A stretch of 64,000 nucleotides of DNA from assembly GCA_020536535.1 (NCBI GenBank), contig JAHLWZ010000511.1, positions 4,735 through 68,734 on the forward strand, given 5' to 3'. The notes beneath the pieces were generated by a model. That model saw nothing but the letters and a program-made list of their open reading frames with translations. It searched no databases and was not told the origin of the DNA. The stretch's first letter is position 1, and the number at the start of each line of letters is the position of its first letter. Positions 4,027 through 20,009 of this stretch are shown in pieces. Source of the stretch: Pelomyxa schiedti. Its lineage: Eukaryota > Protista > Evosea. The position numbers and the translations under genes are program-made.

Positions 4027-7000
4027 TTATGGAGGGTTGAGGTGCAGGTCTCTCCACCCCTTTGTGTCAATCGGGAATTCAGTCCTGAGGTAAGTTGTGT
4101 GGTCCGGCAGTAGATACTGCTGCACTTTGACACACATTTCGCCGTAGTGCTTCTGCAGCAGCGCGTGGAACGATGCGTGCTTCTCGGAAATGATGGACTT
4201 GTTGAGCGCGAGTGCGAAGCCGCAGAAGTTGACAAACACGCACACGGCCCAGGAGAGTTCCTTTATGTGCTGAAGCGGCTGCTTTTGCCGCATTGTGGGA
4301 GACAGGAATGTTTCGCATATCTTGAGAGGTCCCTCGTTGACCACTGTGGGTGATATTAGTGGGAAAGTTTAGAACCAGGTTTTTTTGGATTCACATACTT
4401 GGAACAACACTGCCTTGGAGTACTTGTTGCAATGGATTTATCTTTGGGGGTGTATTTTCGAGTTGTTCTCGGATTTTGTCAATGCGCTCCGTTATAAGTT
4501 CAATTGCATTTTGAATTGGTTCCAGAATAATCTGGAAATGGTTAGTCTAGTGTTGCGGACTTTTTTTTGGACATAGGGCACGGCACCTCGGTTTTGTGTA
4601 TCACTTCGAGCCGGTTTTTGACAAACGGGAACGGAAGTTCTGTTTGGTATATTGTCTTCTTCTTTTTCTGGTCAATAAGATTGTCGGCAATCAATTTCTT
4701 TCCTTCACTGAATGCTTGGCTGGAAATAAAACGACCTTGAAAAAACACCACTTGTTAGGTGCTGGAGAATAGTGTGTTTGGACTTACATGTGTTGAAGTG
4801 CCGCTGGAAAGGTGAAACTCTAGCAGTTACCTCTGCAGCATCAAAGTACGGGTCCACAAAGGCCACTTGATAGTACATTTTGCGTTGGTCAAGAGCTTTT
4901 ACATCCACAGGCTTGTTGGGTAGTTGGACTACATCTTCCGCTCGGATGACAGGTGGTGGAGGCGGTGGGATAGGTGGAGGTGGAATGTCTGCATCAAGTG
5001 GTGGAGGAGCAATATCGGAATCCGGAGGTTGTAGGCCTGCGGATTCCACTGCGGAAATCGCCTCTGGTGAAGGTGTTGGTTCTGGTGCAGTGTGTTTGCA
5101 CAAGAACTGGGATACGTGCTGCTGCATGGTTGCCAAGTTGCAGTCGGGTGGCATTTTGTAAATAAACTCTTTGCCAGATAAGGCAGGGAAGGCGTCTCCA
5201 TAGAAGCCGATGCGGTAAAACCTCCCCAATATGCGAGGATCTTTCCCCTTTGATGAATGGTGAAAGGAGAGAAAACATTGGAGAGGAATACCTTTTCCTT
5301 TTCTATCATGATTTTGCATATGCGGGAGCATTCCTCCATGGCTTGGAGCATCAGGGGATAATTTTTCTCTCTCTTGTGCAGAGTGCTCAAAAGGTGATTT
5401 ATTTCAATGCATGTCTCAAATAAGTTCACCTTTTTGATGTTACTGCAAAGGATAAAGGGTTCACAAAGAAAATGTGTTCACCTTTTCCAAGTATCTTGCT
5501 GCCTTCTTGAGGGAATCAATCATTGACTTTTCACACCACAAGTTCGAGGTCAACTTCGCGTTTTTCTGTGGCATTTTCTATTATGAAGAAATTGCGGAGG
5601 GACAGAAGAACCTGGCATAGTCCCATTATCCCTTTCACCGGTCCATCCATTGCAGAAAGATTTGGGGTGAGGACTGAAAAGTGAGAGGCTGTGATCGAGT
5701 CCAAACTGTGGAGAATTGACTCGTCAGGCTGTGATCAACTACCAACGAAGTTCACTTACCGTTTTTCCAAAATGAGGTACTGGGAAATGAGATACGCAAT
5801 CATTATTTGGCATTGCGCAGCTTCCTCCCAATCGCGGTACTAAAAGCAAATGTTTATTGGGAGGACACAATCCAAGGTAACTGGCATACCACTCTGTGAT
5901 GCTTCTTTGAGATAAAGCTATCTAAGTATGTGATCAGTAAGTCTGGATTGTCATTGTAGCTCATCGCAGCCTGGAAAAATAAGTCCACCTGCGACTCCGG
6001 GTCCTTTGTACTGCGAACTTGGCCCCAATACCTAAAGAGCCTGTCAGAAGAAGAGACGTTACAGTTGGGGCTACCTAAATAGCGCTTTGAGTCTGAAGGT
6101 GACTTCTTTGGCATTTTCTTTGAATTCCCGAATTGTGGTTTCCGAGGGATTGTCTACGTATTCGGGAGCGCGGTTGTCAATGTCATTTTCAATATGCTCC
6201 AGCATCTGCAGCAGTAAAAACTGTTGGGAGTCCTGCTGCAATGCAAGGAGGCGAGCAGCAGCCACGATTGTTTGTATTTTCATTCGGTACATATCGCCAG
6301 TTTGTTTGAAGTTTTGCTGTATTTTTGTGAGAAGAGTTGAACTTGAAGCAATAATGTTACAATTAGCATCTTCCTAAAGAGTTCTCTTGCTGGGATAAGG
6401 AATTTGGAGTTGTGGGCACCATTCATAAAATTGAGCAATTCATTGCTAAGTAGTTCACAATATCTTTGTAGAAGGTGAAATTTTTGGTTGCTTACATGAA
6501 GAGGGTGTAGTACGAATTTCCTTGTGCAACAAAAATTTGATGGCCATGGTTTTCAACAATGAGATCCAGGACTCCAAACGTTTGTTTCATTACCAACATC
6601 TGAACGCATCATTAGCTAGACGCCTAAATAACTGACGTAGTACTTGGTCAGCAGGGGCACTCTCTAAAACACTTGTAAGCACACTCAGCAGTCGTTGGAA
6701 AACAGGGTTTTGACTGCTCTTGAGAAATTCATGTCTGTCTTTTGTGTACTCTTGGCATATCCTCACCGCCACTGCCAATACATCATTCAAAGCGGGTTGT
6801 TCCTTTGGTTGTTTAATTTCTATCACCCCAGTCTTAATTAAAAATCAGTACCAAATATTTTATGCAGCTCCATATCAACTCAAGAAATAGTGTGTTGCGT
6901 TTCTCTGTATCTCTGGACCACCAGGATTTCAACAAAGAGGGTTGCACGTTCTTGAGTACATAGACAACGCAAATGAGATACTCATGCTTGTGAACAGGTT

Positions 7001-16740: not shown

Positions 16741-17007
16741 GCTCCAAAAAAAACAAGAGTCCCTTTGCAACTGTTTTCAAGTTACAGTGGTTTGCGAAAG
16801 TCGTGAAAAAATTCCGAAACAATTTTTGCATCTGGAAAATTGTGTGTGGTGGAGGTGGTGTGTTGGTCACGTGGAAGTCGTAGGCAACTGGCCAAACAAG
16901 GAAAGCTTCGATGCCTTCCACTATTTTTTGCGTTCCCCCCTTTCCAACACACCACCCAAAAAAAAATACAACAAAAATCAAAAAAAACAAAAAAATCGTG
17001 AGAGGAG

Positions 17008-18346
17008 ATGAGCTGCTACCCCAGGGTAAATAGTGACTGTGCGATTGCAAACAGGGACTTGAATGGACTGGGCATCACACTACCACCACCACCTCCACTT
17101 CTTACACAGCAACAAGTATCACGGCCAGCACAACAGTGGCAAATGCCGGCACCACACTCACAACAGCTACAACCACAACCACAACAACTGTGCCACCAGA
17201 CCTGGGTCATTGCGTGCTATGGCTGTGGGCATCCTACAGAGTTGCGGGTAAAGAAAGAATCCTCCAGAGGAAAAGGAAAAGGAAAAGACCAGACTCAGGT
17301 GAGAATATGTTGAATGAATATTCTTTACTTGTTCTTGCTAACAATTGGCAGAACCGGCAAACTGGAAGCGTCTATGATAGGTTGATGTGCAAGTGTAGGT
17401 GCCGAGGACTCTTTCCAGATCCTTGTGGAGGTAAGTAGCACTGTATTCAATTATGTTGTTCGGCTGCTTACTTTCAGCTTGCGATGACTGCCGTCGATTA
17501 ATTAATGCTGGGGACTTGTGTGGCTGTGGGTGTGGTGGCTGCGATCCTGCTGATGATGGAACATGCCAAGGATGCTCACGACAACACTGCACAGTGTGCC
17601 AGTACGTAATAACTGTTGCTTATATTTTTGTCCTTCACATTGTACAGGTTCTGTTCATGTAAATGCGCAGCCTACCCTGAGGCTACTGAAAAAGAATGGC
17701 CTGCCTCAAAGGCAGCCGAATTAAATAGAAGTCTTCAGTTCAAGCTCTCAAAGCAAGGGGCCAAGCAGGATCTAGCCGGCCTCAGTGAAAACCCAGAACT
17801 ACATAATGCTTTGGCTGAGTGTGTGGCAAGCAACCCTTTGGCCATGTCTGCACTTACTGAGAGTGTACAGATGAATCTAAGTAAATCTTTTTAATAATTC
17901 CTTTTCACTCAACCACTACAGGAGGAAGATCAGGTCAATGTGGGCAATCAACTGCTGATTTTGTCAGTTCTCTTCCAAAACGAGTGCCACCAGCTGTACC
18001 TGTGACAGACAAAAACCCGGCTAAACGATTATGTACTGACCAAGCACCTCCGGACCCAATAAAAACAACCAAAGGTACCTTCTCATTTACTCTACCCACA
18101 CCTCACGCTATGGTAGTTCTAATCCAAAAACTGAGAAAAATTGCTGGTGCTGAAAATGCTGTGCTATTTCATGCCATGTTTTCTGTGGTTCATGATTACC
18201 AGAGGTTTATTGACCAGTACGACGATGCTGAAGTTGAAGAAGCACTCAAGCGGGACTACCCAAAGGCTGTAAAATTAATACAAGAACAACTGAGACAAGA
18301 ACTACTTCTCGATAGTGGCACAGCACCCTCACCACAAAGTTCCTAA
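17008..18346 (+). CDS. Transposon cargo/accessory protein, ~370-383 aa: Q/P-rich N-terminus, Cys-rich core, helical C-terminus
   Basis: Exons 17008-17298, 17352-17430, 17478-17601, 17648-17880 and 17922-18346 splice GT-AG into one open frame; CYGC..CKCRC..CDDC..CGCGCGGC..CQGC..HCTVC..CSCKC. Confidence 0.8.
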
Positions 18347-18381
18347 ACTAAAAAAAAAAAAATTTTTTTTTATTTTTTGTT

Positions 18382-19646
18382 TTATAATGGGTTTGTGTAT
18401 GGCGTGTATGGAAGACCAGGAACATAGTAGTGGCAAGCAGACGCAAATTTCTGTACCAGTGGCCCATCAATTGCAAAAGCAGCCTTGTAAATATGTTGTG
18501 CAAGATTCTGTTCCGTTATTTGACCAGGTGACTCGCGGAGGCGCCTCTTGACTTCGGCAAAGCAAAGCTCAATCCAGGCTAGATCAGGTGAGGCTACTGG
18601 CCTAAAAAGGGTTGAGGCCTAATAAAAAAGAAAAGACATACCGCGGTACCAGAAGGTGACCTTCCTGTGAAACTAACGCAAAGATGGAAGGGTTAAGGTG
18701 TGCCTTGTGATTATCCATCAATAAAATGCGTTTTTGGCCACGTATTTGCGGGAGTAATACTACAGCAAGCCAAACATAGAATAGTGATGTGTTGAGTGTT
18801 CCTGGAAACACGAAACAACCCAAAGACCCAACATTAACATCGGCACCCATTATTAAAGTGAGGTGTTTTGATTGTGGTGGCTAAGTTATTATTAGTGCAA
18901 GTTTAAGAGAATTGCAAAGAGGGATGGTGAAACATACATGATGGGTGCGAACAGGTTGACCAGGCAAGGAGTGCCCTCTGCGTCTTGCTGTATCCAACAG
19001 GGTGCACCCCATTTCATCTAGATCGAGCAATACCTCAACTGGTACACAAAAAATACTAGGGTAATATTAGAATACAGAGTTAGGAAATGGACACAAACCC
19101 ATGAGGACTCTCAGTAAGAGTATTGGTAAACCAGGCCCGTCGTTGTGCCTATCAGGGCATTAGTAGGACAAATGTATCCAGCAGCAACGAACCTCATTTC
19201 TCTCTCCAATAATTTTTCGGGTAGTAAAACGAAGGCGGAAGCCAAGTTTCTTTATTGCACGGCTGATTTGCCAAAGCCTACAAACCCCAATATTTAAGAG
19301 ATACTACTGAAGAAAGAGGGATATACTTGCAGAATTCGTGTGTTGCCGCCAGCACAACTGTCTGGAGCTCTTTTAATGTCGCTACTGGGTACAAGAGTAA
19401 GGTCCAGGCAATCATATAACACGCCAAAAAACTCACAGAAAAAGGCCTCCCAGTTCGTTTTCGTACTTCTAATTGAGGTCCTAGTACGTGGTTTTTGCAT
19501 GCACAGTGGTTGAATTGCTCCACACCTTGCTGCCGGTACCGGCGTACTGTGCTCTCACTCACTCCCTCAATGCGGGCTACAACACCAACTGATTCGTTCT
19601 GATGGCTCAATACCCGTCGGCGTTTGGCAAGGGGGTAGCAGCTCAT
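18382..19646 (-). CDS. Tc1/IS630-family DD34E transposase, ~345 aa, 5 short introns, frame intact
   Basis: N-terminal HTH (VARIEGVSESTVRRY, GRP; second HTH ATLKELQ..ISRAIKKLGF); catalytic LDE, MDNHKAH and SPDLAWIE with 34 residues between the second D and E. Confidence 0.93.
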
Positions 19647-20009
19647 CTCCTCTCACGATTTTTTTGTTTTTTTTGATTTTTGTTGTATTTTTTTTTGGGT
19701 GGTGTGTTGGAAAGGGGGGAACGCAAAAAATAGTGGAAGGCATCGAAGCTTTCCTTGTTTGGCCAGTTGCCTACGACTTCCACGTTACCAACACACCACC
19801 TCCACCACACACAATTTTCCAGATGCAAAAATTGTTTCGGAATTTTTTCACGACTTTCGCAAACCACTGTACAAGGGGATAGGGAATTTTTTTACAGATT
19901 TCACAAAAACTGTGATTGTCGGCTCCCTCTTTTTTCTACAAAATCGAATTGTTTTGTCATGTACCAGGCACAAAAAAATGGGTTTATGTTTGTGCCCAGT
20001 GCCCAGCAG

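Follow-up and report, generated by a model that had tools for sequence, protein, structure and literature searches.

Tc1/mariner transposases are the textbook one-protein system and form the basis of common gene-delivery tools. Obligate helpers in this superfamily are known only from ciliates, where what they do is hard to separate from programmed DNA elimination. There may also be a two-ORF 'L31duo' group, for which a literature search gave no match. The Paramecium elements Tennessee and DDE1-3 belong to the IS630-Tc1-mariner superfamily, measure about 3 kb, have TA ends, and carry a DDE ORF together with ORF2, a conserved, intron-containing gene of unknown function that is common to all families (PMC5405496). 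The ciliate elements TBE and Tec encode a DD34E transposase and additional ORFs under purifying selection; the zinc-finger ORF of TBE is its fastest-evolving gene, and in Tec the TIRs are long and both strands carry ORFs (PMC4724952, PMC7325037).

Other superfamilies offer parallels of a different kind. MuDR carries the convergent genes mudrA and mudrB, whose promoters lie in TIRs of about 215 bp; it encodes a helper of which the function is unknown, and both transcripts are alternatively spliced (PMC3440606). The VANC protein of Arabidopsis VANDAL is a family-specific anti-silencing factor borne by a DNA transposon (PMC6719617). In the Drosophila P element, non-productive splicing of intron 3 yields a truncated product instead of transposase (PMC7776569). 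In Amoebozoa, a review reports only two elements comparable to those of ciliates (PMC7325037), passages on Entamoeba elements mention no second gene, and the genome paper of Pelomyxa schiedti does not mention transposons (PMC8887013). Literature searches returned no paper on the two-gene Pelomyxa clade described here.

The locus lies in a 64,000-nucleotide stretch of a P. schiedti contig (the window) and was compared with the whole assembly (52,367,397 bases in 5,337 contigs). An element of 3,085 bp occupies positions 16785-19869. Its two arms, 16783-17022 and 19632-19871, repeat each other in inverted orientation except for a single mismatch at 16868, and each has TA as its outermost two bases. 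Inside these dinucleotides lie two 238-bp TIRs, the left (16785-17022, plus strand) beginning CAGTG and the right at 19632-19869 (minus strand). Two genes converge on a short A-tract/T-tract spacer (18347-18381): a Cys-rich accessory gene, here called the partner (17008-18346, plus strand), and a DD34E transposase (18382-19646, minus strand). RNA contigs stop near this spacer, at about 18330-18340 and 18370-18395. The partner has its 5' end and its first five codons in the left TIR, and the transposase has its first five codons in the right TIR; the ATGs at 17008 and 19646 each lie 15 bases inside the inner TIR edge, and both genes begin with the identical MSCYP. An earlier annotation made from the letters of the window (the sequence-only reading) had described the TIRs, their TA flanks and these starts correctly.

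By its triad, TA duplication and TIRs, the element is a member of the IS630-Tc1-mariner superfamily. A TA is present at every young end examined. It is not a MULE, as it matches no MULE domain and its duplication is TA rather than 8-11 bp. It departs from the Tc1 family in the strict sense, which has a single transposase gene, in carrying a conserved second gene. The transposase forms an open frame of 328 aa when its exons are joined, with the triad D150, D232 and E267 and 34 residues between the last two, in agreement with the DD34E assignment made from sequence. The same annotation counted five introns; there are six, the extra one being a 45-nt in-frame intron (19525-19481) that is removed in RNA. 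The exons, placed by model and RNA, are 19646-19526, 19480-19327, 19277-19193, 19148-19099, 19055-18938, 18880-18642 and 18601-18382, and RNA joints are seen for five of the six productive introns.

Spliced models were searched one exon at a time, and full-length searches used the deposited paralogue P0002, Pelo_9610. Pfam DDE_3 matches one transposase exon at 28.9 bits against a cut-off of 28.6. NF033545 matches a paralogue fragment at E=7e-9, yet under that model's cut-off, and several HTH models match the N-terminus at E values of 0.01-0.1, each below its cut-off. With the catalytic exon as query, relatives in the genome are found at 55-67% identity. Beyond P. schiedti proteins, the transposase searches returned only three short, distant metagenome loci and nothing in viral contigs; no partner gene was seen at the one metagenome locus examined. 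A distant, intron-containing relative of the transposase (36% identity) lies at L062:858-1370, on a metagenome contig that comes from another eukaryote and is too short to show ends or a partner.

Several copies in the genome bear on mobility. A full copy on contig C633 differs from the window copy at 2 of 3,089 bases, and near-identical element ends occur at other TA sites in C1607, C2554 and C270. Older, damaged copies are present on C714 and C601, and the genome search gives a low copy number for each family. An empty site with a single TA is found both in contig C3957 (150-171) and in DNA run X4, which proves the TA duplication and shows that the insertion is polymorphic. The sequence-only reading had taken the TA duplication and the single TIR mismatch as signs of recent activity; near-identical copies and the empty site bear out the recency, whereas the mismatch probably does not belong to a single insertion. 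The best explanation is an autonomous, recently active cut-and-paste transposon from a clade of Pelomyxa elements in which two genes have been present for a long time.

The empty site connects the left flank of the window with the right flank of the C633 copy (window 16784 and 19870; C633:5340), and the left TIR of the window is identical to the right TIR of C633. Given that junction and that identity, the C511 and C633 flanks were probably exchanged across the repeat, through misassembly or recombination. A search for the reciprocal empty site found none. The TA on the left (16783-16784) is the one that is single in the empty site, and the TA on the right (19870-19871) probably belongs to another insertion, the left end of which lies on C633. 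The element's own sequence is unaffected by this exchange. Gene order across 16785-19869 in the window may, in view of the apparent swap, be wrong.

Related and neighbouring repeats were also noted. A 755-bp non-coding element on C887 (L052:3222-3972) has 152-bp TIRs, TA flanks and ends resembling those of the window family; judged by those ends, it is likely a non-autonomous derivative of that family. More such ends occur in C3946 and run X4. On C572 (L042/L043), three stacked two-gene units, partly decayed, lie inside a 9.7-kb contig. A 25-nt motif with 268 genome matches, apparently an unannotated high-copy dispersed repeat, adjoins two element ends; it occurs at L047:3077-3140 and 6014-6077 (C714), at L038:3277-3301, and at about 51916 in the window. 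The C714 copy forms the centre of a palindrome of this repeat, with arms of about 64 bp. Elsewhere in the window, a stop-free plus-strand frame of 2,066 codons runs from 25986 onward and overlaps a 497-codon frame on the opposite strand, and two long open frames with the same beginning, at about 42910 and 49993, suggest a duplicated segment or another repeat.

The partner encodes 369 aa in five-intron form, its frame being open when the modelled exons (17008-17298, 17352-17430, 17478-17601, 17648-17880, 17922-18074 and 18117-18346) are joined. Its multi-zinc-finger-like domain (17215-17700, plus strand) contains 14 Cys as well as G, P and W residues that are invariant in six families; the cysteine pattern by itself suggests that the protein binds zinc. 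An AlphaFold model of this domain is poor (pLDDT 56), and a structure search with it gave no match. A second, helical domain (18119-18328, plus strand) is weakly conserved; for a paralogue it is predicted to form a three-helix bundle (pLDDT 84), and a structure search retrieved generic bundles only.

A convergent Cys-rich gene faces the transposase in the window family, C968, C753 (two copies), C449, C1578 and C572. These are the six families compared, with C4070, C3255, C1119, C1776 and C5157 left out, and together with the full C633 copy they bear out the expectation that other copies keep both genes. Intron 2 (17431-17477; 47 nt, phase 1) and intron 3 (phase 2) retain position and phase in all six. 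Sequence identity among the families is 21-44% in the Cys domain versus 55-67% in the DDE exon. A comparison of the window copy with the older C714 copy gives a dN/dS of 0.12 for the transposase and 0.30 for the partner (p=4e-5), and partner codons 246-369, downstream of intron 2, give 0.21 (p=7e-4); the C753 a and b copies hold too few changes for a selection test. These ratios indicate that the Cys-rich gene is under purifying selection and is no passenger, and the neutral decay that would have counted against the sequence-only reading is absent from them. Transposase and partner trees agree on a split between window plus C968 and the rest (supports 95/93 and 96/96), which is weak evidence because the partner tree has very long branches. 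With a more distant transposase, C1952, a partner was undetected within the 1.3 kb of a short contig.

A partner profile run against 1.84 billion representatives matched six proteins, all from P. schiedti and all at element loci. No homologue outside the species emerged from Pfam, NCBIfam, a PDB sequence search, two word-index searches or the profile scan, and the scan likewise found no host source gene. Ciliate proteins gave zero matches in that scan, where ciliate germline ORFs may be poorly represented. Sequence and structure searches yielded no reading of partner function. NOA36, considered as a relative (Atlas 0.81), was rejected because its score is at chance level, and Atlas matches at 0.93 for the helical domain are unnamed, unconfirmed basidiomycete proteins.

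Does the TIR supply the start codon by design, as the sequence-only reading proposed? TIR length is 238 bp in the window family and ranges from about 29 to 196 bp among related ones. The 196-bp TIRs of C968 end a few to about 20 bases ahead of the starts, those of C753 end well ahead of them, and in C449 the TIR is only about 29 bp. An ATG within a near-perfect TIR is found in the window family only, with a relic in the C753 family, where the two gene starts are alike (both MPR; p=0.001 versus shuffles). The two starts are unrelated in C968, C449 and C1578. Because it is seen in the window family alone, apart from one relic, the TIR-supplied ATG is not a design of the clade: the comparison of families indicates that the arrangement is real and may recur, yet that the clade does not depend on it. 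The MSCYP of the window family resembles MSYP, the transposase start of the sister family C968, and this likeness is most simply read as replacement of the other end by a copy of the transposase end. Separately, in two distant families both genes have AATCGTG shortly before the ATG (window 16997-17001 and 19653-19657; L040 near 2830 and 6010), and this motif is a possible initiator-like element.

Transcription was followed in three single-cell RNA libraries (X1, X2 and X3) from one sample, in the form of contigs that drop rare isoforms and carry neither level nor strand. All three contain spliced contigs of the two genes. In X2 a template-switch oligo abuts 17004, which places a partner 5' end inside the TIR, four bases before the ATG, in that one library. 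The sole transposase 5' end is internal, at 19464, and a TIR start of transposase RNA was not seen in the libraries. Of the proposed MuDR-like design, the two components are supported, as convergent, transcribed genes under selection, with a partner 5' end in the TIR; TIR promoters for both genes may be part of it.

As assembled, the RNAs of both genes are non-productive. One or two splice events put each of them out of frame, and neither full protein would be encoded, so the claim that both genes are intact holds for the open DNA frames and not for the RNA contigs seen. The symmetric co-expression of transposase and helper that the sequence-only reading proposed likewise goes further than these RNAs. 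In the partner, introns 1, 3, 4 and 5 are removed whereas intron 2 is retained in three of three runs, which creates a stop at 17436-17438 and a 125-aa product; the predicted spliced transcript of 17008-18346 is therefore confirmed in all but this intron. The retained intron also contains an ATG that opens a 254-aa frame over the remaining partner (17453-18346). In the transposase, an out-of-frame intron (18937-18802) appears as a joint in X1, X2 and X3. Use of the distal acceptor at 18802 removes 79 conserved coding bases (18802-18880, minus strand) and leaves a 189-aa product without D232 and E267. Six families conserve this stretch, and the bin depths of X1 and X2 are consistent with zero coverage there. 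A 52-nt coding segment (19385-19436, minus strand) is spliced out of frame in X1 and X3, giving a 55-aa product, and its counterpart in other families is open coding sequence. In the RNA contigs, a productive junction is seen neither at partner intron 2 nor at the 18881 acceptor. C714-type alleles in the X3 transposase contig show that a subfamily about 6% apart makes the same out-of-frame joints, and C714-type partner RNA is present although the sole assembled C714 copy is without most of the left TIR. Non-productive isoforms, one feature of P-element-type control, are present in the Pelomyxa element.

Our main reading, to which we assign a probability of roughly 0.6, makes the partner a zinc-finger helper specific to its family, one that improves the success of its element either as a cofactor acting at the ends or by counteracting silencing. 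A nuclear multi-zinc-finger partner would work for its own family by binding element ends or chromatin, and would raise transposition either as a transposase cofactor or as an antagonist of silencing, in a role like that of MURB, TnpA or VANC. The Cys domain diverges faster than the DDE exon, which is consistent with co-evolution with the TIRs of each family or with an arms race with the host. In vegetative cells, splicing would limit output in the manner of P-element intron 3, and a minor or stage-specific isoform would supply the full proteins. The window-family TIR would have lengthened when the transposase end was copied onto the opposite end, and the same promoter and start for both genes would be a by-product of that copying, not a requirement. 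A far-reaching version can be put forward only tentatively, and probably claims too much: an undescribed amoebozoan Tc1/IS630 clade would need a new class of multi-zinc-finger helper, a shared splicing block would switch both genes in a two-key, P-element-like fashion, and the window family would couple them further through a shared TIR promoter and start codon.

A regulated splice pattern and simple inefficiency are almost equally likely. The out-of-frame RNAs could stem from inefficient, unregulated splicing, from nuclear intermediates or from an artefact of contig building, while productive mRNA is sufficient and constitutive, and this explanation has a substantial chance of being right, though somewhat under one in two. 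The contigs derive from a single sample and collapse minor paths, the pyrimidine tract of the distal acceptor is strong, the AG of this acceptor is missing in C968 and C449, and alternative splicing is reported for MuDR too (PMC3440606). Against it, three libraries and two subfamilies about 6% apart show the same two events, adjacent introns are spliced in those same contigs, and the bypassed sites look canonical: the donor reads GTAAGT, and a CTAAT branch-like motif precedes the unused acceptor. On another reading, the partner itself or the truncated products (the 125-aa partner; the 55- and 189-aa transposase pieces, which keep the N-terminal HTH) might be repressors that hold copy number down in the manner of the P-element 66-kDa and KP products. 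The RNA contigs show just those isoforms, each family has few copies, and the P element sets a precedent (PMC7776569). Repression is nonetheless unlikely, since selection reaches the 3' half of the partner, past the premature stop, and a pure repressor would be harder to keep across such divergent families.

Two other explanations concern the reason the second gene is kept at all. Purifying selection on all TBE ORFs has been read as a benefit to the host (PMC7325037), and a comparable, domestication-like role could be imagined for the partner, as both Pelomyxa genes are transcribed; low copy number, polymorphic insertions, several decayed copies and the failure to find a fixed stand-alone copy make this quite improbable. 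A Pack-type cargo, in which a recently captured host fragment drifts neutrally, might account for a low-complexity N-terminus, a break in the C714 copy and a protein without known domain. It is at odds with six divergent families that share introns and cysteines, with dN/dS well below 1 and with a host source gene that was not found; its probability is negligible, and we regard it as excluded.

The closest described systems include those of ciliates, which are of the same superfamily as the Pelomyxa element with its putative helper. The Pelomyxa element shares with Paramecium Tennessee and DDE1-3 a size of about 3 kb, TA ends and a second conserved, intron-bearing gene. The Paramecium triads are DD32E or DD33E rather than DD34E, and the ORF2 proteins of Tennessee and Anchois, judged by eye, have few cysteines, unlike the Pelomyxa partner. 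TBE and Tec resemble it in their DD34E transposase and selected accessory genes; they differ in having three ORFs, which in TBE include a 57-kD kinase/zinc-finger ORF and in Tec a tyrosine recombinase, and TBE also has telomeric ends. Domain searches found no kinase or recombinase domain in the Pelomyxa element proteins, and telomeric ends are likewise absent. None of these ciliate accessory proteins has detectable homology with the partner.

MuDR, as an analogy only, appears similar in its two convergent genes, its alternative splicing and its TIR promoter, a feature that in Pelomyxa is indicated for the partner (5' end at 17004, one library). It belongs to another superfamily, whereas the Pelomyxa element has a TA duplication, a DDE_3/IS630-type core and no similarity to mudrB. 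VANC, as a family-specific accessory protein of a DNA transposon, may serve as a model for the role of the partner; VANDAL is of the Mutator superfamily, and no sequence similarity between VANC and the partner was found. The P element shares non-productive splicing and differs in superfamily and in having a single gene, as against two genes affected here. Because two-gene Tc1/IS630 elements are already known in ciliates, the Pelomyxa element is a variant of the multi-gene ITm elements with a novel helper and does not constitute a new category. The suggestion of an undescribed system is accordingly too broad for the architecture, given TBE, Tec and the Paramecium elements. What appears new, from sequence comparison, is an accessory protein without relatives outside P. 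schiedti, and the amoebozoan host lineage.

Taken together, these observations describe a compact, young, transcribed element with two genes, which brings with it a cysteine-rich domain that has no known relative. It may also be a case of splicing control over both genes of one transposon. The six natural sets of transposase, putative helper and TIR found in this amoeba make the role of the accessory gene testable.
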